Of a stretch of 64,000 nt of DNA, positions 16,850-44,709 are shown piece by piece. The notes under the pieces were generated by a model that saw nothing but the letters and a program-made list of their open reading frames with translations, was not told where the DNA came from and did no database searches. The first letter of the stretch is position 1. Each line of letters starts with the position of its first letter. The DNA is from Macrostomum lignano. Taxonomy: Eukaryota. Both the position numbers and the translations under genes were made by a program. The stretch covers positions 300,944 to 364,943 of the forward strand of contig NIVC01001247.1 in assembly GCA_002269645.1 (NCBI GenBank), given 5' to 3'.

Positions 16850-19800
16850 ATCTGTAGAATTTCATATTTGACTCTAGTAAAACAGCTTGGCAATTGCTGA
16901 TTGATTATCCTGGATTTCCCGTATTTTAATGCATAGAAAATTTTCCGGAATCGCCGCCTTGGAATATCTAGAAAGCAGATTAAGCTAGAGACACGATTCT
17001 TTCTAGGGAAGATAGGGACTGACACGCTCTAATGATCTGTAGAATCTCATATTTGAGTCTTCTAATACAGCTTGGCAATTGCTGATTGATTTTCGCGAAT
17101 TTCACCATTTGAATGCATTGCAATTTTCTGGAATCGCCGTTTTTGAGTGAATATCTGGAAAGCAGATTAAGCTAGAGACACGATTCTTTCTGGGAAGACA
17201 GGGACTGACACGCTCTAATGATCTGTAGAATCTCATATCTGAGTCTTCTAATACAGCTTGGCAATTGTGATTGATTTTCCTGGATTTCCCTTATTTAATA
17301 CATAGAAATTTTCCGGAATCTCCGCCTTCGAATATCTGGAAAGAGATTAAGCTAGAGACATGATTCTTTCTAGGGAAGACAGGGACTGACACGCTCTAAT
17401 GATCTGTAGAATCTCATATCTGAGTCTTCTAATACAGCTTGGCAATTGCTGATTGATTTTCCTGAATTTCACCATTTGAAATCATTGCAATTTTCTGGAA
17501 TCGCCGTTTTGAGTGAATATCTGGAAAGCAGATTAAGCTAGAGACACGATTCTTTCTGGGGAAGACAGGGACTGACACGCTCTAATGATCTGTAGAATCT
17601 CATATCTGAGTCTTCTAATACAGCTTGGCAATTTGTGATTGATTTTCCTGGATTTCCCTTATTTAAATACATAGAAATTTTCCGGAATCTCCGCCTTCGA
17701 ATATCTGGAAAGCAGATTAAGCTAGAGACATGATTCTTTCTAGGGAAGACAGGGACTGACACGCTCTAATGATCTGTAGAATCTCATATCTGAGTCTTCT
17801 AATACAGCTTGGCAATTGCTGATTGATTTTCCTGGATTTCCCTTATTTAAATACATAGAAATTTTCCGGAATCTCCGCCTTCGAATATCTGGAAAGCAGA
17901 TTAAGCTAGAGATATGATTCTTTCTAGGGAAGACAGGGACTGACACGCTCTAATGATCTGTAGAATCTCATATCTGAGTCTTCTAATACAGCTTGGCAAT
18001 TTGTGATTGATTTTCCTGGATTTCCCTTATTTAAATACATAGAAATTTTCGGAATCTCCGCCTTCGAATATCTGGAAAGCAGATTAAGCTAGAGACACGA
18101 TTCTTTCTAGGGAAGACAGGGACTGACACGCTCTAATGATCTGTAGAATCTCATATCTGAGTCTTCTAATACAGCTTGGCAATTGCTGATTGATTTTCGC
18201 GAATTTCACCATTTGAATGCATTGCAATTTTCTGGAATCGCCATTTTTGAATGAATATCTGGAAAGCAGATTAAGCTAGAGACACGATTCTTTCTGGGGA
18301 AGACAGGGACTGACACGCTCTAATGATCTGTAGAATCTCATATCTGAGTCTTCTAATACAGCTTGGCAATTGTGATTGATTTTCCTGGATTTCCCTTATT
18401 TAAATACATAGAAATTTTCCGGAATCTCCGCCTTCGAATATCTGGAAAGCAGATTAAGCTAGAGACATGATTCTTTCTAGGGAAGATAGGGACTGACACG
18501 CTCTAATGATCTGTAGAATCTCATATCTGAGTCTTCTAATACAGCTTGGCAATTTGTGATTGATTTTCCTGGATTTCCCTTATTAAATACATAGAAATTT
18601 TCCGGAATCTCCGCCTTCGAATATCTGGAAAGCAGATTAAGCTAGAGACACGATTCTTTCTAGGGAAGACAGGGACTGACACGCTCTAATGATCTGTAGA
18701 ATCTCATATCTGAGTCTTCTAATACAGCTTGGCAATTGCTGATTGATTTTCGCGAATTTCACCATTTGAATGCATTGCAATTTTCTGGAATCGCCATTTT
18801 TGAATGAATATCTGGAAAGCAGATTAAGCTAGAGACACGATTCTTTCTGGAAAGACAGGGACTGACACGCTCTAATGATCTGTAGAATCTCATATCTGAG
18901 TCTTCTAATACAGCTTGGCAATTGTGATTGATTTTCCTGGATTTCCCTTATTTAAATACATAGAAATTTTCCGGAATCTCCGCCTTCGAATATCTGGAAA
19001 GCAGATTAAGCTAGAGACACGATTCTTTCTAGGGAAGACAGGGACTGACACGCTCTAATGATCTGTAGAATCTCATATCTGAGTCTTCTAATACAGCTTG
19101 GCAATTGCTGATTGATTTTCGCGAATTTCACCATTTGAATGCATTGCAATTTTCTGGAATCGCCATTTTTGAATGAATATCTGGAAAGCAGATTAAGCTA
19201 GAGACACGATTCTTTCTGGGGAAGACAGGGACTGACACGCTCTAATGATCTGTAGAATCTCATATCTGAGTCTTCTAATACAGCTTGGCAATTGTGATTG
19301 ATTTTCCTGGATTTCCCTTATTTAAATACATAGAAATTTTCCGGAATCTCCGCCTTCGAATATCTGGAAAGCAGATTAAGCTAGAGACACGATTCTTTCT
19401 CTAGGGAAGATAGGGACTGACACGCTCTAATGATCTGTAGAATCTCATATCTGAGTCTTCTAATACAGCTTTGCAATTGCTGATTGATTTTCCTGGATTT
19501 CCCTTATTTAAATACATAGAAATTTTCCGGAATCTCCGCCTTCGAATATCTGGAAAGCAGATTAAGCTAGAGACATGATTCTTTCTAGGGAAGATAGGGA
19601 CTGACACGCTCTAATGATCTGTAGAATCTCATATCTGAGTCTTCTAATACAGCTTGGCAATTGCTGATTGATTTTCGCGAATTTCACCATTTGAATGCAT
19701 TGCAATTTTCTGGAATCGCCATTTTTGAATGAATATCTGGAAAGCAGATTAAGCTAGAGACACGATTCTTTCTGGAAAGACAGGGACTGACACGCTCTAA

Positions 19801-22100
19801 TGATCTGTAGAATCTCATATTGAGTCTTCTAATACAGCTTGGCAATTGCTGATTGATTTTCCTGGATTTCCCTTATTTAAATACATAGAAATTTTCCGGA
19901 ATCTCCGCCTTCAAATATCTGGAAAGCAGATTAAGCTAGAGACATGATTCTTTCTAGGGAAGATAGGGACTGACACGCTCTAATGATCTGTAGAATCTCA
20001 TATCTGAGTCTTCTAATACAGCTTGGCAATTGCTGATTGATTTTCGCGAATTTCACCATTTGAATGCATTGCAATTTTCTGGAATCGCCATTTTTGAATG
20101 AATATCTGGAAGCAGATTAAGCTAGAGACACGATTCTTTCTGGGGAAGACAGGGACTGACACGCTCTAATGATCTGTAGAATCTCATATTTGAGTCTTCT
20201 AATACAGCTTGGCAATTGCTGATTGATTTTCCTGGATTTCCCTTATTTAAATACATAGAAATTTTCCGGAATCTCCGCCTTCGAATATCTGGAAAGCAGA
20301 TTAAGCTAGAGACACGATTCTTTCTGGGGAAGATAGGGACTGACACGCTCTAATGATCTGTAGAATCTCATATCTGAGTCTTCTAATACAGCTTGGCAAT
20401 TGCTGATTGATTTTCGCGAATTTCACCATTTGAATGCATTGCAATTTTCTGGAATCGCCATTTTTGAATGAATATCTGGAAGGCAGATTAAGCTAGAGAC
20501 ACGATTCTTTCTAGGGAAGATAGGGACTGACACGCTCTAATGATCTGTAGAATCTCATATCTGAGTCTTCTAATACAGCTTGGCAATTGCTGATTGATTT
20601 TCGCGAATTTCACCATTTGAATGCATTGCAATTTTCTGGAATCGCCATTTTTGAATGAATATCTGGAAGGCAGATTAAGCTAGAGACACGATTCTTTCTA
20701 GGGAAGATAGGGACTGACACGCTCTAATGATCTGTAGAATCTCATATCTGAGTCTTCTAATACAGCTTGGCAATTTGTGATTGATTTTCCTGGATTTCCC
20801 TTATTTAAATACATAGAAATTTTCCGGAATCTCCGCCTTCGAATATCTGGAAAGCAGATTAAGCTAGAGACACGATTCTTTCTAGGGAAGATAGGGACTG
20901 ACACGCTCTAATGATCTGTAGAATCTCATATCTGAGTCTTCTAATACAGCTTGGCAATTGCTGATTGATTTTCGCGAATTTCACCATTTGAATGCATTGC
21001 AATTTTCTGGAATCGCCATTTTTGAATGAATATCTGGAAAGCAGATTAAGCTAGAGACACGATTCTTTCTGGGGAAGACAGGGACTGACACGCTCTAATG
21101 ATCTGTAGAATCTCATATCTGAGTCTTCTAAAACAGCTTGGCAATTTGTGATTGATTTTCCTGGATTTCCCTTATTAAAATACATAGAAATTTTCCGGAA
21201 TCTCCGCCTTCGAATATCTGGAAAGCAGATTAAGCTAGAGACACGATTCTTTCTAGGGAAGATAGGGACTGACACGCTCTAATGATCTGTAGAATCTCAT
21301 ATCTGAGTCTTCTAATACAGCTTGGCAATTGCTGATTGATTTTCGCGAATTTCACCATTTGAATGCATTGCAATTTTCTGGAATCGCCGTTTTTGAGTGA
21401 ATATCTGGAAAGCAGATTAAGCTAGAGACACGATTCTTTCTGGGGAAGACAGGGACTGACACGCTCTAATGATCTGTAGAATCTCATATTTGAGTCTTCT
21501 AATACAGCTTGGCAATTTGTGATTGATTTTCCTGGATTTCCCTTATTTAAATACATAGAAATTTTCCGGAATCTCCGCCTTCGAATATCTGGAAAGCAGA
21601 TTAAGCTAGAGACACGATTCTTTCTGGGGAAGATAGGGACTGACACGCTCTAATGATCTGTAGAATCTCATATTTGAGTCTTCTAATACAGCTTGGCAAT
21701 TTGTGATTGATTTTCGCGAATTTCACCATTTGAATGCATTGCAATTTTCTGGAATCGCCGTTTTTGAATGAATATCTGGAAAGCAGATTAAGCTAGAGAC
21801 ACGATTCTTTCTGGGGAAGATAGGGACTGACACGCTCTAATGATCTGTAGAATCTCATATCTGAGTCTTCTAATACAGCTTGGCAATTTGTGATTGATTT
21901 TCCTGGATTTCCCTTATTTAAATACATAGAAATTTTCCGGAATCTCCGCCTTCGAATATCTGGAAAGCAGATTAAGCTAGAGACACGATTCTTTCTAGGG
22001 AAGATAGGGACTGACACGCTCCAGCGATCTGCAGAACCTCATATTTGAGTCTTCTAATACAGCTTGGCAATTTCTGATTGTTCTTACTGGATTTCCCATT
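16850..22100 (+). repeat. ~185-bp satellite array, about 29 monomers, two subtypes (A/B) forming ~371-bp dimers
   Basis: Constant part GGGACTGACACGCTCTAATGATCTGTAGAATCTCATATCTGAGTCTTCTAATACAGCTTGGCAA. Variable part A is CCTGGATTTCCCTTATTTAAATACATAG; B is CGCGAATTTCACCATTTGAATGCATTGC. Same-type ORF echoes at 21051, 21422 and 21793 are 371 bp apart. Confidence 0.97.
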
Positions 22101-22743
22101 TAAGAATTGATGACGACACTCATAAAGCAGAAATTTAAAAAATCATCAAAGTTTCATTTCGTAGTTACCTACTTTCAGTAGCATTTATTGAAAAATTCTT
22201 GGCTGAAAGATTCTGAAAAAGCTACTTTTTTGCCGAGAATGATTTTGATAACATACGAGCGTATTATTTCTTGAAATGAGGTTATAGACTTGAAAATTGT
22301 TCAACAAATAAAAATGGAGATCCAGGAACATAAAATTACTAATAATAGACCCTAGACTTATGAAAAGCGTGTTTTTTTACACAGTGCCCCCCACTCTGCG
22401 CCCTCTCGATAGTAAGTAGTACAGTGAAATTGTGAAAAACTCGGCGTCGAAATTTCGATGTTCTGGCGCCCAGCGCCATCTGTTGGACCGGGCGCCAGTG
22501 CACCACTGGGTTGTGTAGCTTTTGTGTAGCGTTAGCGTAGCGTTTGGATTCTGTGCCATACAGGAAAGAAATATTTTTTAAATATTTGTATTAAATCTAA
22601 CGAGCCTGTTGTAATTCAATTTTCAGTTTTAAATCGGTGTTGTAAAATAATTTACAAGCCCTTCGCCGAAGAAGCGGGTAGACTCTGGTCTCTGGTGCCT
22701 GCTCGATGCGAGTAAAGTCTTGCTCGTTCCAAGCTAATTTGGA

Positions 22744-25700
22744 ATGGACCCGACGGTCTTAGAGATTCTTCCACAGCCGCCTAATCCGACACCCTTGTTA
22801 AACTTCTTCCCGAATGAGGAATATTTTGACTTTTTAAAGTCTCGTTACAATGAACTAAAAACAAAGCCTGGAACTAGAGATGGACTACTTGGAGTCGAGG
22901 AATGTAAAAACGAAGATGATGAAAAGACATTTGGGTTTTTTGCAAAGGCTTTTATCTTTGTCTTTTTGGGAAACGAATATCTATTTAGGAATCAAGCAAC
23001 GGAAGGTCAACGATTCCTCAATTTGTTCAAAAATTTAATTGGCAAACAAGCTGCAGACACGCTTAACCACGCTGCCTCTCCGAATTCGGACCCTGAATGC
23101 AGTGGTGGTGTAATCGACGAGGGCAGTATGAAAAGGGGAAATAATACCCGAGCTTCTTCAAAGCTTTCTAAAGACAATAGCGAAGGAAATTGTGCTATAA
23201 CGTCTCAACTGTCGGAACCTGAAGGCAACGTTATTGACTCCAAAGAAAACAGAACAAACCGACGAATCAGTGTAAAAGCTAGCGCAAAGTTTCTTATGGT
23301 TAATAGATATGCAGACAAGTATGAAGAGCTTATAAAAGAATGTTTCAAGCCTAAGTCTAGCAACAAAAGCGAAGAGTCAAAGGCTGCGTCGAGTCAACTG
23401 ACATTTGAGTGGACGCATGAGCATTCTTGCACACTTCAGTTCATCACTTTACATTATATAGTGGGCGAATGCCGTTTAATGCTCTTTAACCGGACCAATG
23501 TCCGAGCGCATAGACTAAGAGAGAAAACAAAGTTTCTTTTCTGGCTGTGTACTGATTATATTCGAAGAGCGCCCGAAGAGTCCAAAGTTTTTGTCGACCT
23601 ATCCAGACACGCGACTGGAAGCATTCTTTTTAGCTGTGGAATGCAGCAGGGTACCTTTGAACATTGGTATCTATCTAAAGCATTCCTTTGTTTCGAAGCC
23701 ATGATTAATTGGAAGCCTAGAAAACATTCAAGAACAGTTCGCAAGCTAGACTCGGATATTAGAGTTGACGATGGATCTATCCAAGGAATTCTAAAGTTGA
23801 CGGCCATTTTTATTGAACTTCGTCAGGCTACGAAGGCTCGAAAATTGATCGATCAGGCTCTTAAACTCAACAAGTTACCAGCAGATACTGAGATCGTTTG
23901 CAAGAGTTACTTTACTGCCTATGCCATGTACTTGTACGGACTAATTGATTTTGAGGAAACTTGTCCTCTAGCCAGTAAACTTAATGCGGGTTCTCGTTTA
24001 CTTGACCGCGAAAAGCTTATGAAAGCATATGGAAGTGCAAAGAAACACCTGCGCGAGTGTTTAAAAAATTTAACGGAAGAAATCTCCGAACTTGGGCTTA
24101 CCGCTTCTGCGTACACATTGATGGGCATTGTTTGCGTGAACGAAGCAGCGGACTTTACAATGGAGCATGAAGGCGGTTTGTAATATTTAGAGAAGGCTGT
24201 TTCGTTAGAGTCTAAATTCGAAACCAACACTATTATGGCTGCAAATGTGATCCAGATTTTGCAGCAAGGTACCACGCTGGCAACTACGCAGGCTGCTCGA
24301 GACAAGTGTCGAGAATTGTACTTTACCGTAAGCATTAATAATTGTTATTCTTGGTAATGATTTAAATGAATTTTTTTCACTTATTATAGCATATCGGTAC
24401 TTCAGTAAGAGCTAATGTATCACATTTTAATTCTAGATCGTTACTACAAGAGAACCAGAAACAATTCGAACTCAAGTCGACGTTCCTACCGATGTTGAAA
24501 CATTGGGCTTTCCTTCATCTGCCGAATCTACATCCCAGTATAACACGAAGGATGTTTCTCCTGCAAGTGCGTCCAGTCAAAGCGATAGTGTCTTTAATGT
24601 AGTTGCCATAGCAAGAGAGTTCACCTATGGATATCGCGAAGGAAGCTTAGCTTACTGGAAGAAGAAATTAAACAATATTCTGGACCGTAGCAAAATATTA
24701 CACAGATTGGTTTTCCTTCTATTTCTCTCGAGACATCATCTACGCTCGTATTTCTTGAGAAAAGCTGAATGCCGGCAAGCTAAAGTCTCACGCCTAATCT
24801 CTCTTGCATTTGGTCTGAAGCTAGAAACCAATGGAAGCTTTACATTAAAAGATCTGTCTGAATCTTTTCCACGCCATTGCAGAGAATTGATCTTTGTAGT
24901 CGCATTCTGGACTATCAATGAAGGCATGCTGGCTCTTGGTAATGCCCTCGAATATTATCAGCAAAAGTCCGCCGCAGAGGTGCGGCAACGTTGGGACGAT
25001 TGCGATGAGTCATTCGCTTTGCAGCTTGTTTCTTGGGCTTTGTATAGTTTTCGGCTGAGTAACAAGAAAAGCAACGATTGGAAAAGAGCTCAAGAATGTT
25101 TCAGGCGCGGTCAGGATTTGTTCAACGCGATCCGAAATAGCTGGAAATCTGACGAAATTCCTGCTCTTATTTTCTTGGAAAATTATTTAGCAGAAGGCTT
25201 CTACCGACTAAATGACGTCGTAGCATTCGATGATCGCTACAAGACCGATAAAAAACTCATTACAACCACAGTTGACTTGCTACAAGACCGAAACCGATTA
25301 AAACGTTTAGAAAGAAGTCACAATGGCCCAGGAATCGAGACTTTATTGAGTTACTTAAACTCTGTGTGCGTGAACTTTCCCGCATTGTTGAATCGTCTAC
25401 TGAACCAATCAGCTGGGAGGCGTAATCGCAGGCTTCACGGTGGTCTCGTCTCTAGCCTTTTAGAGTCAACTGGCATCCTAGAGACTTTCGACTTTATAAT
25501 AGACACGTCGCAGGCGTCCGACAAGCTGAAACAACTGGATGAGGCTTACGTCCTGTGCCAAAAAAGAGGTCTAATGGATACAGAGGCCCACGCTTTGGTG
25601 CACATGCAAGCGGGTCTTCAGCTATTACGCTATGGGGAAGTTAATCCGTTTAAGCCTCATTACGACAGTTTCAGTGCTGCAATTTTAAAGTTTAGGAAAG

Positions 25701-26738
25701 CTGCTAGAATTCTCGAGCTTATCTGCGGCGATGATGTCAAAGTGACGTACTGTTACACTGTTTTAAGCGTTCTCTACTCCAGTCAGATGCAGATTGACGA
25801 GCAAGAATCTAGATGCCTTCAGTGTCTCAGAAAGTGTGCCAGGATTGAGAGCAATCTCATCTTCAAGGAAGCATCGCCCAGTCCCTGGCTATGGAAGTGT
25901 TTAGATGTGGCCCGAATTTGCAGAGAGCAGTTTCGCATGGTGCGGCAAAACACGAATGATGAGGATGCGCTGATTGAAAGCGAATGGCAAAGTATATTCG
26001 ATAAATTGTTTGTAAGTTTTTCACTATTATGCATGCAATCTTTAAGAAATATTATGGACGCGGTACATTTAATCATATTTGTCTTCGGCAGGCCCTTCTT
26101 GGTCGAAAGACTTTGATGTGTCAAATGCCAGTCGATATTAACGATGCATCGAATTCCGAGACTATGTTGGCTGAAACTCTATCAGGTGAGTGTAAATTTG
26201 CACGTGTAGCCATTTGGTATTTGAGACTTGGTTTACCTGAATGTAAAAACACAGTTTAGAACACACTTTCTCATTGTTGAATGGATTTTTTTAATTAAGA
26301 TTTTTAATTCCATCTAGCTATAATGACAAATAAGATTTCCTCCTTTTTTTAAAAACATCAATCAACGTTACAGATGCGTTGGTAGACTGGGAAGAAAAGC
26401 GAACTGTCAGCATGAAAGGCCTCACGAATCTGTTTAGGGATCGCCAGTTTCCAGAGGACTGTCTACCAAGCGATGGCGAGATCAGAGTCTACGCTACTTA
26501 CCTCAACAAGCTGTTTAGTCAGCACTGGGAGCTGTGCCACAACGGCGACAATCGAGATTGTCCGCTGGAAAAACTTGACGTGGAGCGAAACCACTTTTTG
26601 CTGGGTATTTCCGAGTACTCACGCAAAAGCGTCAAGGAAAAAAACAAAATTTTCACCCGACTACAACGGAATCACAATCTGCTGTTAAATGAATGCAAGT
26701 TTGCTAAACGCTTTCACTACAAATTTGCGAATTTTTAA
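22744..26738 (+). CDS. TPR-like helical repeat protein, paralog A (~1200 aa); in-frame TAA at 24181
   Basis: Exons 22744-24327, 24437-26011, 26092-26185 and 26374-26738 with GT-AG sites and phases 0,0,1. Sequence after the TAA (YLEKAVSLE) aligns with YLQEAVQVE and HLKEAVSIE in the paralogs. TPR-like segment ILELICGDDVKVTYCYTVLSVLY...RCLQCLRKCARIESNL. Confidence 0.8.
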
Positions 26739-27984
26739 ACTTCACTTTTTTATTTAAGCGATTGAAATGGAATTCAAAATGTGATTCGGTTTTAGTTGCT
26801 TTATTATTGTGCTGAATAGTCGCGTTTTTTATCACGAATCGTATATTAAACTTTCTCTTTGTTTACTTTGAATTAAAACTTCTGGATTCGTGTGAGCTGA
26901 ACAAGTTTTATTTTATGGTGGTATGAACGAGCTCTTTACATAAATTTTACTGTCAGTTTATGAATCTCCCTAACTCTTAGTTAAGTGCATAGAATAGCGC
27001 CAATGTCTCAAATATTATTGTACATAATCGGTTTGAACTATGATCTTTTTGTTTGTTTGATTTTGTTTTATCGAAATCGACAAAACGTTAACAGCTGTTT
27101 GAAAGCATTACTGGTAGCGACTTTCAGTAGGTATTTTGTCGAGCTATTTGGGCTAGTTAAGTGATTTATCAGGTAACAAATTGTTTTGCTACTCTGCACA
27201 GCTTTTTACAGGTTTGCTCTGAATAGTTTGCCACTTAATAACCTGACATTTTTCTGTCTAACACTTCGTTCGATATTTTGTTTCTTGCAGCTGATCTGTT
27301 TTATTGCACTGTACATATTTGGCTTTAAAATGATCCGTGTAAATTTTATGTTTATTTATTCAATATAATAATAATAAGGAAAATTTTATATTTGCTACTG
27401 ACTTCACTCCTGATTTGAATTTCAAACCGCCTAAACAATATATTAAGACTGCGTAAATGTTTAAAAGCTTCAGGGTTTTTGATTTATTGTGATATGGGTT
27501 TTTACAAGCAGTTATGCCGGTTATATGTATTAGTTCTATTAGTTACACCTGTTTTGAAAACTTTAACGCGTCTCCCAAAATCAACGAATTTTAATTATGT
27601 CTAAATTAATTGTTCAGAATCGGTAAAATTTACAGTTAAGGATAAAGCAGTTTTGCTTTTCCGCTACTATCAGTAGTTTGGCTCCAGGAAATGTTAGTAA
27701 TTGGAGTAAGTAGATAAGGCTAGGCGGGTTTGCCTACAATTAAAAAAAGCAGTGGAACTCTCGGAAGAACAAACGTTTTAAACACATTTATCGTGGAATA
27801 TAATCCTTTTGTAGACCCGGCTTGGGCTATTGAATTTTTAGGAAAATAGCTATAGCTACTTTTTGATTTGGTCTAGGTAGCAACGTTTGCTATAGTATTC
27901 TCAATTATCACTGATTACAGCTGAATCTCATTTTTTACTTCAGACTGAGAAAATCTACATTTAGCTACCCTGACCCTAAGAACA

Positions 27985-30900
27985 ATGCAGAATCAGGAGC
28001 GGGTTGAAATGCGAATCTGGCTTCAAGTCGTGCCTCGGGAAGAAGCTCTTCAATACTGGCAGGAGCGTCTTAGGCTTGTCGAAGCTTCAAGTTCGGAAAA
28101 TTCGGATCGATCTCAACAAATTCTGCGACGAGCTGTCTGTCACGTGATGCTTGGCCTTCATTACCTTTTAATGCAAAATCTCAGCGACGCTAAAACTATT
28201 CAACAAAAGTTTATGAACTTATTGGGACGAAATGCTATTAAAGATCTTTGGAGCTACATTACCTGCAGCGATAGCGAGAAGTACTCAGAACAACTCAACA
28301 AATATTTAGCAAATTTTAATTTTAACGAAGAAAAATCAGTTTTATATTTCGTTACTGTCGTTTTCATAGCAAACGAAGGTCAGATGGCCCTACGCGATCC
28401 AAAAAGGTGCGGATCGTGGGCCTGGTTCTGGCTGGTTGAAAGCGCCCAGAGGCTCGGCAAGATTTGCCTTCAAAGCAAAGAAATCGGTCCAGAAATGACT
28501 GCGTGCGTTCGATTCAGCATTGGCAGCTTGCTGCTCAACTGCGCCAGCGTCAAAGACGTCTACGCGCACAAGTACTTGTTGAAGTCTTTCTCGCATTTTC
28601 AGGCTGCAATTGAGAGACGGATGAGAAAAGGCCTCACTCGCAGAATCGATGCTGAAATTGTGTTGAACGAGCAGTCGATGGTAGCTATTGTTAACATGGC
28701 CACGTGCTTTTTGGAGCTTCGTCAGATGGATAAGTGCACTGCGCTGATTTGTCAAGCCCGTTTGCTGCTAGGCAAATCAACAATTCTAGACGAGCTTTCC
28801 AAGCACTACTTGAGTGCTTTTATTGACTACGTTGATGGCGTCAATGACTTCGAGCGTACAAGTCCTTTGCACAGCAAGCTGAACGCTGGGTCGGTTATTT
28901 TAAACGCCCGAGAGCTAAGAGAGCTATACGACAGCGCTTTGGAAAAGCTGACTCGCAGCGCGTACCGGCTGAGACAGAGCTTTTCTAAAAGTACTATTTT
29001 TGCGTCAACGCTTACAATGCTTGGAATTGTGACAGCTAATAGAACGGCGGAGTTTAATGATACTTCTCTCGCGTATCTCCAAGAGGCAGTTCAGGTGGAG
29101 ATGGCTCTATCGCAAAGGAGTAACACGATGCGCTATTTGTTGCAAACAATTAGCGTCGCTGCAGGATTGTTTGAGAACGATGAGAGCGCTATTGCACTCC
29201 GATGGAAAGAGCTGCACAGCTCCGTGGTAAGTCTTAGTATCTCATTCAATATTATCTACGGTTAAAGTGTTAAATGGGAATATTCTAATGATTAGCCGAA
29301 TTTTTTTCTTTAGAAATCTCTGCATCATAACGACCTTAGTGCGACCAAAGAAGAGCATCCAATAGCAGGTGTGTCTGACGTCGATTTTGAGCTGAATCGA
29401 CTGAGCTCTTCGTCAACTGTATCTTTGCTACCTCTGGAGGCAGCTGAGACAGCTGAGCACCAAAATCCTTCTCTTCCTCTTGTTGACCTCCGATTCACCG
29501 ACTGTTATAGACAAGACTGTTTAGATTATTTTAGGCGAAGATTGCGAGAGTGCATCGCGACTGACTCAGCTCTAGCAGCGATATTATGTCGCCTATTTAT
29601 TGCCAGGTTCCACCTGATTCGGTGTGCAATAGATCTTGCTGGCGTGGAGCAAAATGCTGTTCAAGAGCTTCTTTCGCAGAAATTCTCTTTGCACATCAGT
29701 AGACAAAGCAGCTTCAAGCTATCTCAGTTGCGCAGGAAATTACAGCGTGGCGAAGTAGCAGAAATGGCAGAAGCCGTAGCCATTTGCTGCGCTTTCTGGC
29801 AAGCAAATGAGGCAAAATTTGTGCTTTTGGGCTTACAGTTGGGAAAAAATTGGCGTCTGAATAGATCTTCACCTGTTGGTTACTCAGTGAACTCTCCAAA
29901 GACTGGTAGGTACATCAGGGAAAACTGGTACTCTTTCACCGACTCAGTCCTGCTGCGTTTCTGGTCTGACAATTGGCGATTGGCCAGGTGCCTGATGAAT
30001 AACAGTAGAAAGTTGAGCAACGAGCTGCGCGGAGCTTTCGAGGCGAGCGCGGCCTGGTTCCACCTGGGTGCGGTACTCGACAGCAGTCTCGCCGAGGTTT
30101 GCGTCGACCTCAACGAACTGTTGCCAAGTAAGATGCTACGCAGCGGACAGATTAAGCGGTGTGCCAAATCTTTGATTCAGTCACTACAGTCTTGGCTTCC
30201 AAAACTTGACAATGGTTTATCGGACCCTGTGTTTGCTCTTGCCGGACACAGAATCGCAATATTGGACGATGCACTCGGTGCAACCAATGATATCATGAAC
30301 TCATCGGATAACATTACAACAGTGTTGGATTTGAATCAGGATTATGTGAATGTAGAACTTCTCCCCATGCCTAAGCCGAAGCGTAGACTGGCGCCGTTCC
30401 AAGAAGCTTATGATTCGTGCACCTCTACCGGACTTCTAGATACGCCGTTGCACGCCTGTGTACACTTATCCACTGCAGTCATTCTTTACAAAAGCGCGGT
30501 CAAAGATCTCACAAAACCGGCTTATTCACAGTATAATGCCGCTGTGCTTAAACTTCGTCGGGCGTCGAGGGTCTTGGAGCTGTTGGAACCGCTGCATCCT
30601 CTAACTGGGGATTGCTACGCTTTGCTAGCTGTGATGTACTATAATATGATGCAGCTGGAGGACCAGGAAGAGAAAGCGCTGAATTGCTTGAGGGCCTGCC
30701 TAAAAATCCAGCGCAACCTGATTGCTAACGGATGCGCAACCAGTTGTTGGGCTTGGCGATCTATTGATGTAGCGAGGAATTGATGTGGCTGTGTACTTTG
30801 CAACGTCGGATCGCCAGAGCGAGTGGTCTGGCATAGTGACTGCTGCTGACGTGAGTTCAAGATGTCAAGCTGTCTATTGGTTTTGATAGGTTTATTAATC

Positions 30901-31786
30901 GAAGATCTCTAGCCAATTTTGTTAGGGCATTCACCGCCAGTGCTGCAGGTTAAGCGGAGTTGGCCCTGGTTAGTATTCATATGAAGTGGCTTATGTCGAT
31001 CACCCTTTAAGGTAGCCGCAGTAAGCGAGAGGCAAAATAGGCCTAGCTTGAGTTCACCCGCTGTTATAGGGTAGAAGCTCTGAGCTGCAGTAGGAACAGA
31101 GTGAGAATTGTAACCCCACAGTTTCGATGTACAGCATCAGATGCGCCGTGAACGCTCAGTGTTTCTCTTAACCCAAATGGGCCAATTTCAGGCAATCATA
31201 GAAATGAGTAGAGATTGCTCTGTAGAGACAAGAAGTCTGCTGCTAGGCGATGACGCTATATGGACGGAACTTCGACTTGGCGACCGGTTCGTTGCTGAGC
31301 GATTAGTTGGTGCGTTTCTGGAATATTTTTGAAAGGCATTGGCTAAAATTAATATGCGCTCCTACATCTTTTACTTCTACTGTTTACATCTTCCCAGATC
31401 CCATTATCGATTGGGAGGGCAAACAGCATCTCAGAGAAACCTGCGAGGCTATGTTTGGTCGAGTTTATCCTGAAGACAACCTGCCAACCTACACTGAAAT
31501 AATGTGCTACTCGCACTACCTGATGAAGCTATGGAACGCGCACGAGAATGTCTGCGATAGCGAATGGATCTACCTCTGCGTGCCAAAGTGTCGCATGACG
31601 CGAACGTCTAACAATATCCCTAGGCGGAACGACTTTCTCAATGGTTTGAATGAGTACACGCTGGCTGCGCCGCGTGACAAGCAGAAAATACTTCGCAGAC
31701 TGCAAATTAATCACGAGCAGCTGTTGCAGATGTGCGAACCGGCTCAACTCATTGATGCCAGTTACGGTAGAGACACAGAGTGTTGA
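27985..31786 (+). CDS. TPR-like helical repeat protein, paralog B; +1 frameshift near 30778
   Basis: Exons 27985-29226, 29314-30850, 31192-31309 and 31398-31786, with the same phases as paralog A. Removing one A at 30778 gives DVARIDVAVYFATSDRQSEWSGI, matching DVARI...SEWQSI in A. TPR_12-like LEPLHPLTGDCYALLAVMY...KALNCLRACLKIQRNL. Confidence 0.8.
30945..30983 (+). mobile_element. 5S rRNA-derived fragment (possible SINE3-type head) in intron 2 of paralog B
   Basis: GCAGGTTAAGCGGAGTTGGCCCTGGTTAGTATTCATATG matches the vertebrate 5S internal promoter region GGAAGCTAAGCAGGGTCGGGCCTGGTTAGTACTTGGATG at 28/39 (reference from memory). Confidence 0.5.
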
Positions 31787-33212
31787 TAATAATTCATCGT
31801 TTTCAGTAACAATCTATCGGAAAAAATATTGAGCGTATTTGCTTTTTTTCTGCTTGTGTGCTATCTAAAACTGTTCTTGTAAAAAATAGCAGCATGTAAA
31901 AGTTGCCTATAAAACACGCCTGGCTTACTTTCAATGGTTCAGGCCATTTTTCTAGCTCGCATCTTCTCTACGATTCTTTTGTCTATCGATTTTAACACAT
32001 GGCTGAAATTCAAAAAGTTTGGAGTCAATGGAAATCGGAAAATCTCATTTTTTATTTGACCAAAAACATATATGCATGTACAGTGTATGTGTATTTTTTT
32101 AACAAGAATTGGTGCTTCCTTATTTGGCCTATGGTGACTCATAGAGTTACAGAAAGGGTTGTATATCAAAAAGATCCTTAGCGGTGCAGTACTTTAGTGC
32201 ATGACCTCGAAATGAAATAATGATGGATTTATGCGCCCTAAGGAAGGGCAGCGACATGGCATATTCACTTAGTGGATCATCATTTTTATGCGAAGCATCA
32301 ACCTCAAAAGTCAGCTTTGCCGTATAAAGCTAGTGTCTTACTGCACCCAACTTTCTGAAAAATGTTTTATGATTCCAACATAATTAAATTTATCACCATT
32401 TTGTTTTAATATTTAATATTTTATGCCCGCCTGTATGCATATTTATATCAAATAGCTATACAAGCGTACTGTAACTTTGCTGTTGAGAATTCGAGTCAAC
32501 GCGTTTCCTGAAACGAAGTGCTTATCCCCACTGCGTGTCGATAATTCCAATTTTATTAACACGGATCCGTGTCGATAATTTTCAGCTTGTCCCCATGGCA
32601 GCTTTGTTGGAATAGATCGGCACCTTCAAATGAATTAGTTCAAGGACCCCAGAGGTCCTTCTGAATCTGGTATTTACATATAGTTTATTAGCATGCTGTA
32701 TGTAGTTTTGTATTTTTAATTCTAATCAAAAATCTACTATTGTTTTTTTTTCCTTTTGGATGTTCGTCATATGTCGTTATATCCATATTTTTATTCTAAA
32801 CAAATCTTCTTGGCAAAAAACCGTCTTTTTGTTTTCACTATTTTAAGAATCTTCCGAATAAACTACTGAATAGTATTAAGTACTTTGTTAACACTTCCAC
32901 GTCGTTAAAAGGGTTAATTTTTAATTTTCGCTTAGCTGCCGACGTGACTGAGTGATCATATAGATTTGAATAAAGTTCAATAAGCTGCCGTGGGGAAATG
33001 CCGTGGAGAAATTGAACAATTTTTTCTAATAGCCACATCTAGGGTTTCAGAAGTTTTAGAAATAGAACTATAGAAGATAAATACGGACAGCTTCTAATGA
33101 TTTGATATGCAGTTGAAGAAAAGATCTGCAGCTTTTGTATATGGGTTGTTTTCGATCTTGTGCCGAACTCCCTATCAATTTCAGCAGGCCGGTCACTAAG
33201 GCCTCGGAAACT

Positions 33213-34517
33213 ATGAGCTCTGGTCAAGAGCCCATCATCCGAGTGGGTACCTGGTTGCGGTTTGTACCCGAGCAGGATCATACAGAGTTTTGGACAGCCA
33301 GAAACAACGCATTTAAATTTACATGTGGTGACGCGGCTCCGTTCGCCAGAGCTTGCTCACTGGTGATTCTGGCAAACGAGCAGCTCAGGCGTCGTTGCAG
33401 CAGCGACCTGGCTAGCGCCTGCGAACTGCAGAACGAATTTCTGGCACTAATTGGCCAACAAGCTGAAGAACTACTCTGGTCATCTGTCAAATCCGTAGAC
33501 AAATTGGATCGTATTGCTGCTTTCAGACAATTGGCTAATCAGTTTATTGATGAAGAGGGTGGACAAAGAATAGGAATGGCATTCGCTAGCGTTCTGTTCT
33601 TAGTTAACGAGGCCCATCTGGCGTTGTGCAGCGACTCGCGTCGGGGCAGCTTCGCTTGGCTGTGGCTGACGGAGGGTGCCTATCGGCTTGCTAAATATCT
33701 GCTGCGACTGGGCGACTCTTGGCCAGCCCTGGCCCCAGAGCTGACTGGCCTCATGTGCGAGTCCGTCTCCAGGCTAATGTTGAACTGCGCTACTCAAAAA
33801 GATGTTGGCGGGCGTAGATTTTTTGAGAAAGCGCCACAGTTTCTAGACTTCTCGTTGGAGCGTAGAACGCGTAATAACAAATTGGTTCGGCGCAGCGACT
33901 CGGACATTGTGCCAAGCACCCAGTCGATTGTCGTTATTCTACGAATGGCCTCCTGCTTTGTTGAACTGCGTCAGACTCGAAAGAGTCGTGCACTGATTGC
34001 TGTAGCGCGCAAGCTCATCGACTGCTCAGACCTTATTAGCGAACGTTCCAAGATTTATTTCATTGCATTTTCTGACTACATCGAAGGAGTCAGCGAGTAT
34101 GAAGAGACCTGTCCTCTGACAGCTAGATTGAAGAAGCAGCCGTTGAATCAAACTGTTTCTACTGAAGAATTGATGAAGATTTTAGAGAAAGCCAGCGTCT
34201 TTCTAAGTAAAAGCGCGTTTGCTTTAAAGGAACACTTTCCCGGCAGCCCTTTAACCGCATCTGCTTTTACTTTTCTGGGTGCTGCAACCGTTAATTTGGC
34301 CGGCGAATTCACACAGGATGCATTGGCTCACCTCAAGGAAGCTGTTAGCATCGAGCTTACTTTGAGCACTTGTTCCCATACTAGGAGCATTTTGCTGCTA
34401 GTGCTTCAATATGGCTGCGAGATATCTGCAACTACTGACAGCGACTTGAGCAGCTGTTTTAGCGAGATGTACAACACTATGCTGCTGTTGAGTCAAAATG
34501 CTAACGAGGAACACTAA
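33213..34517 (+). CDS. TPR-like protein, paralog C (single-module, single-exon form)
   Basis: MSSGQEPIIRVGTWLRFVP aligns with the B start MQNQERVEMRIWLQVVP. Shares RRSDSDI, FVELRQ, YEETCPL and ASAFTFLG...HLKEAVSIE blocks. It ends at a stop with no splice donor where A and B splice. The ATG at 33213 is preferred over the upstream TTG. Confidence 0.8.
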   Translation: MSSGQEPIIRVGTWLRFVPEQDHTEFWTARNNAFKFTCGDAAPFARACSLVILANEQLRRRCSSDLASACELQNEFLALIGQQAEELLWSSVKSVDKLDRIAAFRQLANQFIDEEGGQRIGMAFASVLFLVNEAHLALCSDSRRGSFAWLWLTEGAYRLAKYLLRLGDSWPALAPELTGLMCESVSRLMLNCATQKDVGGRRFFEKAPQFLDFSLERRTRNNKLVRRSDSDIVPSTQSIVVILRMASCFVELRQTRKSRALIAVARKLIDCSDLISERSKIYFIAFSDYIEGVSEYEETCPLTARLKKQPLNQTVSTEELMKILEKASVFLSKSAFALKEHFPGSPLTASAFTFLGAATVNLAGEFTQDALAHLKEAVSIELTLSTCSHTRSILLLVLQYGCEISATTDSDLSSCFSEMYNTMLLLSQNANEEH

Positions 34518-35618
34518 TTGCCAACTAAATATTTACCATTGGAGATTCTTTCTGATTTATTAAAACACACTAAAAAGCCCCGTTCACACCGCCATCACAC
34601 AACCAATTTGTGCAGAAGGATGAAATTTGAATTGGTGTACAAGTGATCACACGAAATTTGGCCTTTTTGATGGCGGTGTGAATGAGCCTTACAACACAGT
34701 CCTTACAATCACATGTAATATATACAATGTTATATGTTACAAGTAGATGCCTGTTAAAATAAATATTAATAAATAAAAATCTAAAAACTATAACTATAAT
34801 CAGACTATAAAGGTCATGCAACAGTACTTTTTCAGACTATAGTTATTCAATTTGCGTCGAAGTGCCAGGTGATCGTATACTGTACTGTAAATCAGAGTTG
34901 GCTCAAACATTAGCTATTGCGCTAAGCACAAACAACTCAGTAAATTTACATGTTGTATATACTAAAAATGAGTACGCCTGGATCGATAAACAATTGCCAC
35001 AGAATCAGCAACAAAGAACAGCCTATTTTAGCCTTATTAACTTTAGTAGGAACTTGGGAGTATACATGTAGATAGCTAAAATAAACACCAAAAGAAACAA
35101 TTTCTTACATGTATGTAAAAAATGTTCGTGTAGTAGTTTAGTTACTTTAGTTACGTCTTTAGTTTAGACGCCGCACTAGTCAGCTGTTTCCCTCGCTCTC
35201 GCCCCAGGCTTCTGCGAGGGACTCCCCAGAGTCTGCCGCTGTGCAGTTGCCTGTCCCTTCTTGCCTGTCCTTTGGCCTGTCCCTTGCCCGTTTGTCTGTC
35301 TGTCTGTTTGTTTTCGCTTGCCCCTTTTGTCTCGTGTTCCCGTTTTGCAGTGCCCAGACAGCAATTGGTCTGGGCGTGCCTCGATCTGTTTCGTTCTCTG
35401 TTAGGCACCTCCAAATTTGGAGTGCCTTCCTGTTTTCCGGTCTCAAGGGCACGAGTGATTTCACTTGTGGGCCTTTTCCCCCTGTCATGTGAGCTAGTCA
35501 TATGATGGGCCCTCTTCCTTCTTTAGTCCAAAGTGCAATGATTTTATCATTGTACGCTGGGCTCGTGTTTATGGGGAATCACGTGCGCCAGGACCCAGCT
35601 GCCTCCTCTGAGGCAGAA

Positions 35619-35682
35619 CCACAGATACTAGAACAACTAGAACAGATACTAGAACTAGAACTAGTTGTTCTAGTATCTGTGG
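35619..35682. other. Perfect 22-bp inverted repeat with 20-nt loop
   Basis: CCACAGATACTAGAACAACTAG (35619-35640) and CTAGTTGTTCTAGTATCTGTGG (35661-35682). Confidence 0.95.
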
Positions 35683-38600
35683 CCTAGAGCGAGAAGCGAA
35701 GCAACGAGGGAGGGAAGGGCGAGAGCGGCCGCTGACTGCAGTATAAGCATATATTTAAACAGAATCTCGTGTTCTATTGTGTAAGAGCATCGTTCAAGAT
35801 CCGCAGGTTTTTCAACAGCTTACAAAGTGCTCGTCCGTTAGTAGTATACATATTGCCTTCCAAACTAATAAGGTATATATATGTCATTGTTTGTATTGTG
35901 TATTTATTAGTGTATACCAGGTTTAAAGCTGTAAAAATGACAAGACATCATTTGTATGCTGGGTTTGTGCGCCAATTCAAAAATGCAGATTCAATATATC
36001 TACTATGTCATGTACGATTGTACGTTGGGATATACCGTGATGTATACTGAAAAATAGTAAGACCATTGTTGTATGCCAGGAAATCCTAGCATGTTGCCTT
36101 CCAAACTATAGCATATAGGCCTATTAAGGTTAGGAAATTGCTTTATTCTAAAGCCAGTAAAGAAATTTAATATTTAAAAAAAATTAACAAAGATCAAGCA
36201 GACCTTACTTGAAGTACATTGTAAGTAAGATGTAGTAGCCTAGTAGGCCTAGCTTAATAGGCCTAGTTTGTTAGAATATTGGGCTTATAACCTAGACCAA
36301 ACTAAGGATTAGGGCTATATATACACAAGAAATGAGTATATAAATTAGAATGATCTAGCATTAGGCATATGATTGGACCGGCAATCTTCTCAAATTGTTC
36401 GTTTAGTTATTTCCAGAATTATTTCGTCCTCTATTCAAGGGTGGTGGGGGGGGGGGGGGTTGGGGGTTGGAATTAAACAAACATTTCGAGAAGATAGCCA
36501 TTGGACCTTAGTATAAAAATTAGTATATAGAGAAGCCTTGAATTGGTATTTCTTGGTAACAAAAATGGGCCTAATTATATTACAAAAATAGTTCTTATGT
36601 TGCAGGCCTTTTGTCTCTCTATAAGAATCCCACTAAATGCCACCAAAGTTGTTGTAGGGGTAACTTCTGTCCCTACAAATGATTTCACCGCTGTCACTAG
36701 AGTTGTTACAGGGTGCTTATTTATTCCTTTTTGCTAGCCTTACTTGCTGCCACCAAGCTGTTACAGGGGTTGTCCCTTCTTGTTAGTATTGCTGGTTCTT
36801 ACTTATCCTTTACTCGCGTAGCGCATGTACTTCTATTGGTAGCGTCTGTACTTCTATTGGTAGCGTATGTACTTTTATTGTACTTTCTGGCCTGAGCGGT
36901 CTAATAGCACTGTCTGTTCTACTCCTATGCTTCCCCTAATATTATTCTCTCAGTCCTGGGCGTTCCCGGGATCAGAGGGTCACAGCTCTAAGCGAAATCT
37001 CTGCCCTGAGGCGATCTTTCCCTCGCTCTGAGGCGGTTCTCCTGCCCTGAGGCGAATTTACTATTACTGCCCTGAGGCGGTTTCTCGCTTTGTAGCGGTC
37101 CTTTAGTAATACTCCCAATTTGGGGCTTTATACTGTCGCAATGAATAAGTCGAACAAGAATGCTTTAGAATATTTATCGAGTGAACTGATTGTCACTGTC
37201 TTGCCTGAGAATGCAGGAAGAGGTTAACCTCGTGGCCCATTCTGAGCTCCTATTTATACAGTCTGGCTTATGTATTTAAAACAAAATTGGTTTCGTACAA
37301 TATTAATTGCATTCACAACATTAAAACAAAAATATTAGCATTTTGCGGGAATTCAAATAATGGTCTTTCTAAGAAACACGAGTAAGTTTTAAAGCATTTA
37401 TACTGTATTTTAAAAGGCCCTTCCTCACTTATTAATTAATAATAGATTTATAATAGATTAATAAAAAAGTTTTTATTAATCTATTTTTGCATATATTTAA
37501 GCCCTAATGTTTGCATTGCAAGTTTAAAATTTAGGTTGTTGTTTTTGTTTTTGTCTTGCTATATTCTTGTATGCAATATAAGTCTATTGGCATACATAAT
37601 TATTAGCTTTGCAGATTTCTTTCCAACATATATTATTATACAATCCTAGGCCTAAACTTGAAAGTTAGGAAATTCAATTTGGGATCCTATCCCACTAAAA
37701 CAGTAGTGTCTTTGAGCATGATGCTTAACTCTATATTGCTTCAGTTCACTTAGCTATAAAGTATTAGTATTAGCTAGGCCTAGGATAATTAAAAGTGTAT
37801 AGCAACTCCTAGCCTTAGTCCTTGACTAAATAACTATATACAGCCTTCAGATTTGCCATATAATAGCTATAGCTAAGCTGTCAGCTGCATATCTGGCTCA
37901 ATTAGGGCGAGTATAATTGATTGTTATCATCATTATTATTAGTAGGCCTAAAACTAATAGTTAAAAAATTAATTAATAACTAAATTATCAATATAATGGG
38001 TAATATATTGCTTATATACATATATATTCATTTGTGCACATAGGTCATTAGCTTATGTGCATGCAGATGCACATTATGCTGATATGCATATGTATCTATT
38101 CTTTAGATATGCATGTGCCTATGCATATGTAAATCTGCCCAAGTTTGCACCTATTACATTTTCTTAGGTATGCTAGATACAAAAATGAAGACTTATTCTA
38201 ATAGGGATGACAGACAGTTTACCTTTGATGAAAAATGTAAGATTTGGATAAGTTGGTCATTTTTGTGGTAGGAGGCACTTTATAATATTTGTACTTTATA
38301 GTTATTTTAAGATTTATAATTCATATACTTAAAAAATTCTATCAAAAGAATTATATATTCAAAATGCCTTCCAAATAAGCATGGAAAAATGTTCAAAAAA
38401 TTGGCCAATTTAACTAATACAAAAGATCACAACTCTGTAATAATAAATAAGTAAAATTAAATAAAATGACACTTAATACCATTTTAGTAAGTCTCTGCAA
38501 TTTTAGGTTTCATATCATTTACTTAAGATTAGCAAGATAATTTTTAGTTGAAGCCACAATGGCTATTATCAAAAGGTAATATTTTTGTCATCAGAGTGAT

Positions 38601-40359: not shown

Positions 40360-41136
40360 TTGAGGGGCAGATGAGAGTGAAAAGAAGAGGAATAGAATAG
40401 ACGATTAGAAAAGAAATGAGAGGCGAGAAAAGGATAAGAGAAAAGATAGAATATAATAGGAGAGACAAGGGGTGAGGACGATGAGAGAGGGGTGGGAAGA
40501 AGTGGGAGGAGAAAAGTGAGAAAAAGGGGGAGAGAAGAAGGGAGGGAGAAAGAAAAGAGGGGCGAGAGGAGAAAGTAGAGGTGATAAGAGGGAGAGCGAA
40601 GAGGGGAGAGAGGAAAGAAGTCAAAGGAGAGATGAGAGGGGAAGAAAGAAGAGATAAGGTTGTAGAGATGAGAGAGGTGTAAGGAGAGATGATAAATGAA
40701 AGATGAGAACTGAATGAGGAGAGAGGAGGGTGGAGAGAGAAGAAAGGAGACACGAGAGGGAGGGAATATAGAAGAGGGAAGAGAAGAGAAGAAAGGAGAA
40801 AGGAAAGAGAGGAGTCAAAAGAGGGGGAAAAGACAAAAGAGTACAGAGGAGAGGTGAGAGAACATATAAGAGAGTAAAGATGACAGATGAGAGAGGGGAG
40901 ATAAGAGAGCAGAGACAAGAGTGAACAGACGAGAGATGGGAGAGTAGAGAGAACAGAGGAGAGATAAGAGAGAAGAGATGAGACAGGAGAGGTGAGACAA
41001 AATGAGATACGAGAAGTGAGTAGAAGCGAGGGAGGAGAGAGGAGAGGAGGGGAGAGAATCGAGAGAACAGGGGAGAGAAAGGAGAGACGAGAGAAAAGGA
41101 ATAATGGAGAGAGTCGAAAGGAGAAGAGAGATCAGA

Positions 41137-41218
<82 letters not shown>

Positions 41219-41640
41219 AGAGAAAAAAAAGGGGAGAGAGGAGGGAGGAGAGTAGAGACGAAAGAGTAGTGGAGAGAGAGATAAGAGAGTAAAGAAGAGA
41301 AAGTAGAGAGAATAGAGAAGAGAGGAGAGATGATAAATAGAAGAGTGCAAATTAGAGATAAGAGAGAAGAGATGAGACGAAATAGGTAAAAAATATATTG
41401 GAGAGAGGATCGAGATTAGAGGAGAAATTAGAGAGATGATTGAAGAAAGGAGAGAGGAGAGATGAGGGAAGTGTTGAGAGAGCGGAGAGTGAGGAGTGAG
41501 AAGAGGGGAGAGAGAGAAAAGAGAGCAGAGAGAAATGAGAAGAGATAAAAGAGAAGAAAGGAGAGATGAGAGAGCAGAGACGAGAGAAAAGAGAGGAGAG
41601 GCAAGGGACGAGAGAGAAGAGGGAACAGAAAAGAAGACAA
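40360..41640. repeat. 1.3-kb polypurine low-complexity tract including (GA)n at 41140-41196
   Basis: Almost only G and A on the + strand. Confidence 0.95.
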
Positions 41641-44396: not shown

Positions 44397-44709
44397 TTGA
44401 TTGCTAGAAATGTCACTGGATTAGTTTGCAGTTTGCTTGGCAACTCTGTTGTTTTTACATTAATGTCTTATTATTAATGTCTTTCGTATCTTTATTGTTA
44501 TTTGTTTATATCAAGTTATTGTGCAATTCACTCGCATTACGCCAGCTCGTTTGTTATCAGTTTTTATCTGTTAAGAATAGTTTTCTTAATGTGACATAAA
44601 ATTTTCTTTGTCTAATAAATTAATTTTTATTGGCTTATTAGAGTCGCCTTTCTGCAGCTGCTGGCCTGGCTTCAATTTTCTGTCCGCCTTCTGATCTAAT
44701 CTGAGATTT

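Follow-up and report, generated by a model that had tools for sequence, protein, structure and literature searches.

Three tandem paralogs on contig NIVC01001247.1

The window analysed here, 64,000 nucleotides in length, forms the end (the last 64 kb) of contig NIVC01001247.1 in the Mlig_3_7 assembly (GCA_002269645.1) of the flatworm Macrostomum lignano. Seven large open reading frames (ORFs) on its plus strand, between positions 22744 and 34517, were grouped by tblastn into three paralogous units, genes A, B and C, which belong to a family of proteins predicted to fold as tetratricopeptide repeat (TPR) solenoids. When the large ORFs were searched against the window with tblastn, matches among the three units had 26-34% identity and E values from 1e-21 to 1e-63; exon 1 of B aligned with C at 33% identity over 429 residues (E 1e-63), and exon 1 of A matched B at E 1e-27 and C at E 1e-21. 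The similarity extended to the later exons of A and B, with 37% identity over 140 residues between their second exons (E 1e-26) and 34% identity between their last exons (E 1e-14). Judged from these alignments, the paralogy of A, B and C is real and far beyond chance. A first-pass annotation, made from the letters of the window, had described three same-strand paralogs with common motif blocks; both the blocks, which are visible in a three-way alignment, and the tblastn matches bear this out.

Genes A and B each consist of four exons with intron phases 0, 0 and 1, and every intron begins with GT and ends with AG. In gene A, exon 1 (22744-24327, plus strand, as are all exons described here) encodes the N-terminal module and carries a premature in-frame stop, TAA, at 24181-24183 (codon 480), where the independent protein model P0016 has a tyrosine. 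Exon 2 (24437-26011, phase 0), which encodes a linker and the C-terminal module, is covered by the NCBI product PAA70346, a protein of 708 residues whose start, at 24235, lies beyond the exon 1 stop. Exon 3 (26092-26185, 94 nt) ends in phase 1 and has the same junctions as P0016 and P0004, and exon 4 (26374-26738), recognised by tblastn, the family hidden Markov model (HMM) and alignment, encodes a C-terminal His/Cys domain and the TAA stop. The exon junctions of A as a whole are matched by P0016.

Gene B begins with an intact exon 1 (27985-29226, N-module), identical at 100% to the protein model P0001. Exon 2 (29314-30850, linker and C-module) is 1537 nt long, which is not a multiple of three; a replacement of GC by TTGATG near 30779-30785 adds a net 4 bp and places a TGA at 30781-30783. 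Exon 3 (31192-31309, 118 nt, phase 1 at its end) has the junctions seen in P0003 and P0005, which match those of B throughout, and is out of frame here; exon 4 (31398-31786), which encodes the C-terminal His/Cys domain, retains an open reading frame that is no longer joined in frame. The NCBI product PAA70347 (PAA70347.1, the same protein as P0001) is 100% identical to the product of B and accordingly ends at the frameshift, after 903 residues. Gene C is a single exon (33213-34517) encoding 434 residues, equivalent to one N-module; its former splice donor has been lost, and an HMM search of the six-frame translation found neither a second module nor a C-terminal domain downstream of it in the window.

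The shared four-exon phase pattern that had been attributed to A and B is therefore correct as to the phases, and for B it holds only if the frameshift is ignored. The treatment of A, B and C as three intact equivalents does not stand, as A has a stop, B a frameshift and C only one module; as a whole, the original observation was partly confirmed.

The family is found only in M. lignano and apparently forms one array

When 1.84 billion protein representatives, which stand for about 15 billion proteins, were searched exhaustively with the family profile in HMMER, eight matches were returned, all of them M. lignano 'hypothetical proteins' and all with E<1e-30, and no weaker match followed them; no homolog outside M. 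lignano was found in that search. B, A and a 12-sequence profile, used as queries in word-index protein searches, likewise yielded M. lignano proteins only; the profile search, which was saturated by candidates, contributed nothing more than a model in which TOP1 is merged with a family member. These results speak against the concern, raised with the first-pass annotation, that the genes might be orthologs of a conserved TPR family. Except for C, the family sequences can already be found in public databases under the label 'hypothetical proteins'.

Cluster look-ups and locus retrievals gave seven paralog types. The order TOP1-F-E-D2-D is found on NIVC01000421.1, and the order D-A-B-C on both NIVC01001597.1 and NIVC01000572.1 (hereafter L002 and L004); the family is apparently one tandem array, TOP1-F-E-D2-D-A-B-C, the whole of which lies on no single contig. 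Such an array next to TOP1 would be present once per subgenome of this neopolyploid flatworm, with A, B and C as its last three members. Identity between paralog types is 22-40%, except for the mosaic pair D and D2, which are 98% identical in the N-module and 66% in the C-module. Intact full-length members are P0010 (1164 residues), P0012 (1083), P0013 (1094) and the A-type P0016 (1178).

On NIVC01000421.1 (L003/L005), the annotated E (703 residues) and D2 (991 residues) products are truncated, and tblastn located C-terminal domains for both 1.5-2.7 kb past the annotated ends (L005 4677-5072 and 14726-15115). Either several family annotations are incomplete or those copies are likewise disrupted.

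The narrow range of the family bears on a possible role in reproduction, in which the proteins would act in the germline, sperm or egg and lineage restriction would result from rapid turnover. The failure to find any homolog outside M. lignano among the 1.84 billion representatives fits this idea, as do an enrichment of lineage-restricted, fast-diverging Macrostomum genes among reproduction-related genes, reported in one study (PMC7336406), and the description of a flatworm-specific reproductive gene in M. lignano (PMC5816591). No signal peptide was found in the family, so that these are not secreted seminal-fluid proteins, and selection, as described below, is purifying rather than diversifying. 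Six family locus tags were absent from the searched parts of the supplementary tables of these papers, a weak point given that those tables use other identifier systems. Overall we regard a reproductive role as doubtful.

Two homologous modules and a C-terminal His/Cys domain

Full-length members are soluble, intracellular and all-alpha, with a length of about 1,100-1,200 residues. A 12-sequence alignment divides them into four parts: an N-module of about 450 residues, a low-complexity linker that is disordered and rich in Ser and Glu, a C-module of about 480 residues, and a C-terminal domain of about 130 residues. Each module is encoded by one giant exon. Comparison of the N-module and C-module profiles by hhalign gave a probability of 92.9% (E 3.7e-7) over 345 colinear columns, and the C-module HMM matched the N-module of B at E 1.3e-6. 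BLASTP between the two modules gave nothing significant, and a first profile comparison, built on 3 and 2 sequences, was weak; the internal duplication becomes visible only with profiles of 9-10 sequences. These profile alignments indicate that the two modules are homologous and derive from an ancient internal duplication.

Nine columns are invariant across the full 12-sequence alignment, and every one of them falls in the N-module, in the pattern R-x-x-D-x-x-I ... A ... ELR. In the C-terminal domain the residues invariant across five paralog types are D, P, P, E, Y, YL, H-x3-C, C, FL-G, Y and LQ-x2-H, and one further Cys is nearly invariant. This domain had no Pfam or PDB sequence match, either alone or as a profile. 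The family showed neither a signal peptide nor a transmembrane run, and no P-loop is conserved in it; the pattern [AG]xxxxGK[ST] occurs once, in B, and is not conserved.

Database names for the family are inconsistent. UniRef applies 'Separase', 'Cohesin loading complex subunit SCC4 homolog' and 'CHAT domain-containing protein' to near-identical family proteins, and its 'DNA topoisomerase 1' entry P0014 (1850 residues) is a model that merges TOP1 with a family member. Taken at face value, the names of P0002, P0003, P0005, P0017 and P0018 would make the family diverged orthologs of separase, of SCC4/MAU2 or of a CHAT-TPR protein such as TTC28, and human separase does appear among the structural matches described below. 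The names conflict with one another for near-identical proteins, however, and the domains that define those families are absent: a scan of 12 members revealed no Peptidase_C50, Cohesin_load (PF10345) or CHAT at E<=1, and one of P0001-P0003 revealed no Peptidase_C50 at E<=10. The C-terminus is a helical domain of 130 residues and not a caspase-like protease, no separase or MAU2 sequence was returned by the exhaustive HMMER search, and separase ranks only 12th and 27th in Foldseek, with TM of about 0.13-0.15. A single-copy conserved ortholog such as SCC4/MAU2 is also hard to reconcile with a multi-copy, tandem family in one species. Orthology to separase, SCC4 or CHAT proteins was therefore rejected and is in our estimation extremely improbable.

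Predicted TPR-like fold

Pfam scans of the large exons, the database proteins and the 12 aligned members gave nothing significant for the window genes. The sole above-threshold Pfam match in the family is that of paralog E (P0013) to TPR_12, with 31.4 bits against a gathering cut-off of 30.1; among the window genes, B scored 12.6 bits against TPR models and A and C had no match. B shares with P0002 and P0003 weak TPR_12 matches at the end of the C-module. Neither one protein by itself nor the family profile, when searched against PDB sequences, gave a match better than E=1. The view that no family was recognisable beyond TPR_12-like helices, and no catalytic motif, holds in the light of these null searches and of the lack of a conserved P-loop.

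Structure prediction with AlphaFold2 (AF2), followed by Foldseek, an approach that the first-pass annotation had proposed, was run on B and on paralog E and found generic TPR solenoids only. The model of B, from 5 sequences, had a mean predicted local distance difference test score (pLDDT) of 47.6 and is usable for secondary structure only; that of paralog E, from 12 sequences, had pLDDT 63.5 and a predicted template modelling score (pTM) of 0.45, and consists of about 45 helices without any sheet. Both models are all-alpha, which together with the Foldseek matches agrees with the superhelix of stacked antiparallel helix pairs of TPR-like proteins (Pfam clan CL0020); confidence in the better model is moderate. 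The top Foldseek matches in PDB were mostly TPR superhelices, with probability of about 1 and query-normalised template modelling (TM) scores of 0.1-0.23; the list includes CTR9, SKI3/TTC37, IFT139, TONSL, NAA15, subunits of APC/C, LGN/Pins, APPBP2, IFIT1 and IFIT5, and separase. The description of an old tandem family of helical-solenoid proteins agrees with the 22-40% identity between paralogs, the all-alpha models, the predominance of TPR proteins among Foldseek matches and the one TPR_12 match above threshold.

The presence of IFIT1 and IFIT5 in this list is relevant to a second proposal for the family, that its members are innate-immune sensors of the IFIT or NLR kind whose paralogs have diversified to recognise foreign ligands. 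Such a role would suit TPR paralogs that stand in tandem, have diverged deeply and are restricted to one lineage, and the NACHT C-terminal helical domain (NCH2) gave a sub-threshold match in 2 of the 12 members (E 0.066). The IFIT matches (TM 0.12-0.3) are nonetheless no better than those of dozens of unrelated TPR proteins, and IFITs leave the top 50 when the better AF2 model is used. Neither the Pfam scan nor the motif scan showed a NACHT or NB-ARC match, a conserved P-loop, or a death-fold, TIR or nuclease effector, so that the NACHT or NB-ARC NTPase with Walker A motif that marks STAND/NLR proteins was found in none of the 12 members scanned. As dN/dS (the ratio of nonsynonymous to synonymous substitution rates) is also below 1 wherever measured, we consider the immune-sensor proposal unlikely. 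Present evidence supports neither this proposal nor the reproductive role.

Disruptions differ among the three subgenome copies

The genome of M. lignano comprises three paralogous subgenomes, S, L1 and L2, with a single-nucleotide polymorphism rate of 2.2% genome-wide and 1.1% in coding sequence (PMC10733133). The A-B-C block was found three times, in the window, in L002 and in L004, at 95-98% DNA identity, in line with these subgenomes. Gene A is disrupted in two copies by independent mutations: in the window TAT has become TAA, giving a stop at codon 480, and in L002 GGA has become TGA (window position 23638), giving a stop at codon 295; in L004 the gene is intact. The window stop at 24181-24183 is TAT in both L002 and L004, and falls on the dot of L.(Y/H)L, one of the motifs read from the window in the first place. 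Gene B is disrupted in the window only, where the net addition of 4 bp leads to a stop at codon 904 and cuts off the C-terminal domain, and is intact in L002 and L004. Gene C is intact in all three copies, with 434 residues in the window and in L004 and 431 in L002. The splice sites of the family genes are kept in all three copies in the three-way alignment.

The copies also differ by a 4-bp indel at 34480, in the tail of C (L002), and a 6-bp indel at 31784, at the stop codon of B. These end indels alter the last residues between copies (about 10 residues in C) and leave the conserved modules unaffected.

Loss of full-length A and B in the window through recent mutations, together with an intact copy elsewhere, is the pattern of early gene loss after whole-genome duplication. 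Whether the window copies of A and B are becoming pseudogenes is about an even question; loss of the whole family is unlikely. Divergence among the copies is uneven. In the three-way alignment of 22548-34571, the gene A region differs by only 0.13% between L002 and L004, and each of these differs from the window by 1.8-3.3%; from intron 2 of B to the B-C spacer, it is the window and L004 that are close (0.75-2%), with L002 standing 4-6% away from each. This mosaic suggests gene conversion or recombination between homeologous copies.

Purifying selection on B and C, relaxed constraint on A

Values of dN/dS between subgenome copies were obtained by the method of Nei and Gojobori, with Fisher tests. 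Of the three genes, C shows the strongest constraint (dN/dS 0.09-0.20, Fisher p 5e-5 to 2e-3). The part of B before the frameshift gave 0.25-0.42 (p<1e-4), and the shorter part after it gave 0.17-0.41 (p 3e-4 to 0.3); against L002, the values were 0.17-0.19 for this part and 0.19 for exon 4, from which we infer that the post-frameshift part of B was constrained until recently. B and C are under purifying selection. Gene A is relaxed, with dN/dS of 0.5-0.7 between copies. The C-modules of D and D2 gave 0.35, with a mosaic pattern and saturated dS in their 3' part. No test showed positive selection, whether between the copies of A, B and C or in the recently diverged D/D2 pair. In coding sequence the window and L002 differ by 1.2-2.5%, approximately 1-2 times the genome-wide coding mean of 1.1% (PMC10733133). 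The family had been called fast-evolving; with dN/dS of 0.09-0.42 in B and C, 0.5-0.7 in A, and coding divergence of this order, that description is only weakly supported.

These data, with those on the disruptions, also address the proposal that the cluster consists of pseudogenes, already dead or dying, that serve no function at present. The premature stop in A and the frameshift in B of the window, the independent stop in the L002 copy of A, the rates in exons 2-4 of A, which are indistinguishable from neutral, and the fact that C is unannotated could all be read in this way. Set against them are the dN/dS values of B and C, significantly below 1 for C and for B before the frameshift, the splice sites kept in all copies, the intactness of all three genes in L004, the existence of full-length D, E and F paralogs, and a transcript-based annotation. 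On this evidence a cluster of functionless relics is highly unlikely.

Evidence for transcription

The GenBank annotation of this assembly was built from genome-guided RNA-seq transcript assemblies (PMC5730564), and because it is derived from transcripts, the locus tags of A and B imply that transcripts exist. Reads from copies that are 97% identical can be misassigned, which makes this inference uncertain for A and B. That none of the genes is transcribed, an outcome which would have refuted the first-pass reading, is accordingly unlikely. Six family locus tags were looked for in the searchable literature and in supplements of M. lignano papers, where other identifier systems are in use, and none was found; a search of the literature on Macrostomum together with TPR or tetratricopeptide found nothing relevant.

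A putative family of binding scaffolds

Taking these results together, it is on balance probable that the window holds a partly decayed copy of a TPR family confined to M. lignano, built of two modules and serving as a binding scaffold. A non-enzymatic binding scaffold is the most likely function, as far as the predicted fold can indicate. The proteins would act as non-catalytic scaffolds or adaptors for other proteins, the TPR grooves of both modules holding peptide or protein ligands and the N-module cluster R-(R/K)-x-D-x-(D/E)-I ... ELR, the one cluster of invariant residues in the family, forming the functional core. The C-terminal domain, possibly stabilised by zinc, may dock the scaffold to a partner or site; ligand specificity might vary among the paralogs, and C, being a single module, could serve as a stand-alone binder or a competitor. 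The disruptions of A and B would then represent early loss of redundant copies following whole-genome duplication.

Several points weigh against this interpretation. 'Scaffold' is the default reading for any TPR protein, and the modest pLDDT (47.6 and 63.5) and low TM values of the models support a fold class only and not any particular mode of binding. That the C-terminal domain binds zinc is conjecture, drawn from its four or five invariant His/Cys residues. Exons 2-4 of A have dN/dS of 0.55-0.72, not distinguishable from neutral, and given this near-neutral evolution paralog A may be dispensable. Gene C has no annotation in any copy, and a C-type protein is absent from the public protein sets searched. 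Lastly, the disruptions in the window (the TAA and the +4 indel) rest on the assembly sequence.

A more specific possibility, rather unlikely, is a flatworm-specific intracellular recognition system, in which the duplicated TPR modules would be sensors and the His/Cys domain, possibly zinc-binding, an output or docking domain. If so, the array, the gene-conversion mosaics and the module-only C would reflect diversification under host-pathogen or sexual conflict. The initial interpretation of the cluster, taken as a whole, is partly supported.

The value of these observations is modest and mostly descriptive, and their interest moderate to low until expression or a phenotype is known. They define an uncharacterised, lineage-restricted TPR family with a duplicated module and a new C-terminal His/Cys domain, which databases label variously as separase, SCC4, CHAT or 'hypothetical', and they identify in gene C a gene that is unannotated yet selectively constrained. 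They also offer a clean gene-level view of fractionation in a neopolyploid animal, with independent disabling mutations in different subgenome copies of the same gene, one copy intact, and signs of gene conversion between subgenomes. Because M. lignano is a transgenic laboratory model amenable to RNA interference (RNAi), the function of the family is directly testable.

Surroundings of the cluster

The block common to the three subgenome copies spans 22548-35781 of the window, at 95-98% DNA identity with L002 (NIVC01001597.1) and L004 (NIVC01000572.1). Similarity to both copies begins at 22548; on the other side, that to L002 stops at 35620, and that to L004 reaches 35781 and picks up again at 35780-36173 (98.7%). 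Directly upstream of gene A, at 16850-22097, lies a satellite array of 184-bp units (371-bp higher-order unit) with about 28 copies at 89-94% identity. The other two copies have paralog D at this place and the window has no D gene; since the satellite occupies the position of D, the family array is broken in the window.

Family HMM and similarity searches found no fourth family member in the window. An uninterrupted ORF of 649 residues at 11232-13181 (plus strand), with an acidic N-terminus and a Cys/His-rich core, was considered as a fourth paralog and rejected, being unrelated to the family by tblastn and by the family HMMs. It had no Pfam match (best E 4.9) and no PDB sequence match; we take it to resemble a DNA-transposase-type protein.

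The flanks of the window are rich in mini- and microsatellites, at 2547-3721 (a 35/106-bp array), 4540-5091, 7400-7841, 40556-41629, 43104-44077, 44709-45625, 48364-48999, 50696-51148, 51944-56149 (212 copies of a 20-bp unit) and 57549-58371, and there is a GA-rich tract near 41 kb. The swings of GC skew in the composition profile of the window are probably explained by these repeat arrays.

Comparison with known systems

Separase, SCC4 (MAU2) and CHAT proteins have TPR-like helical regions in common with the family, which lacks the domains that define them.

IFITs are single proteins of about 470 residues, known only from vertebrates, with a defined 5'-RNA-binding pocket. The M. lignano family resembles them in being a TPR solenoid family arranged in tandem clusters, and IFIT1 and IFIT5 are weak Foldseek matches (E of about 2e-3). 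It differs in having two modules and a C-terminal domain, and in lacking sequence similarity: homology to IFITs was revealed neither by the exhaustive HMMER search nor by running the family profile against PDB sequences, among which IFITs are represented. Structural agreement was likewise low, with query-normalised TM of 0.12-0.15 and no IFIT within the top 50 for the better model.

A further comparison is with the TPR_12-type arrays (PF13424) of LGN/Pins, kinesin light chain and the rapsyn/TTC28 group: paralog E passes the TPR_12 threshold, and the TPR domains of LGN/Pins gave the highest target-normalised TM (0.45-0.50). The family differs from these arrays in having only 1-2 recognisable TPR_12 units per more than 1,000 residues, and it has no GoLoco, CHAT or other partner domain.

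The best Foldseek matches were to CTR9 (of the PAF1 complex), SKI3/TTC37, IFT139/TTC21B and NAA15 (E 7e-7 to 1e-4, probability 1.0), although TM was only 0.12-0.19. These are non-enzymatic, all-alpha proteins of about 1,000 residues built of helical hairpins, as the family is predicted to be. They have no sequence homology to the family, and are single-copy and conserved across eukaryotes, whereas the M. lignano family is restricted to the species or genus, arranged in tandem, and composed of two duplicated modules of 450 residues followed by an unrelated C-terminal His/Cys domain.

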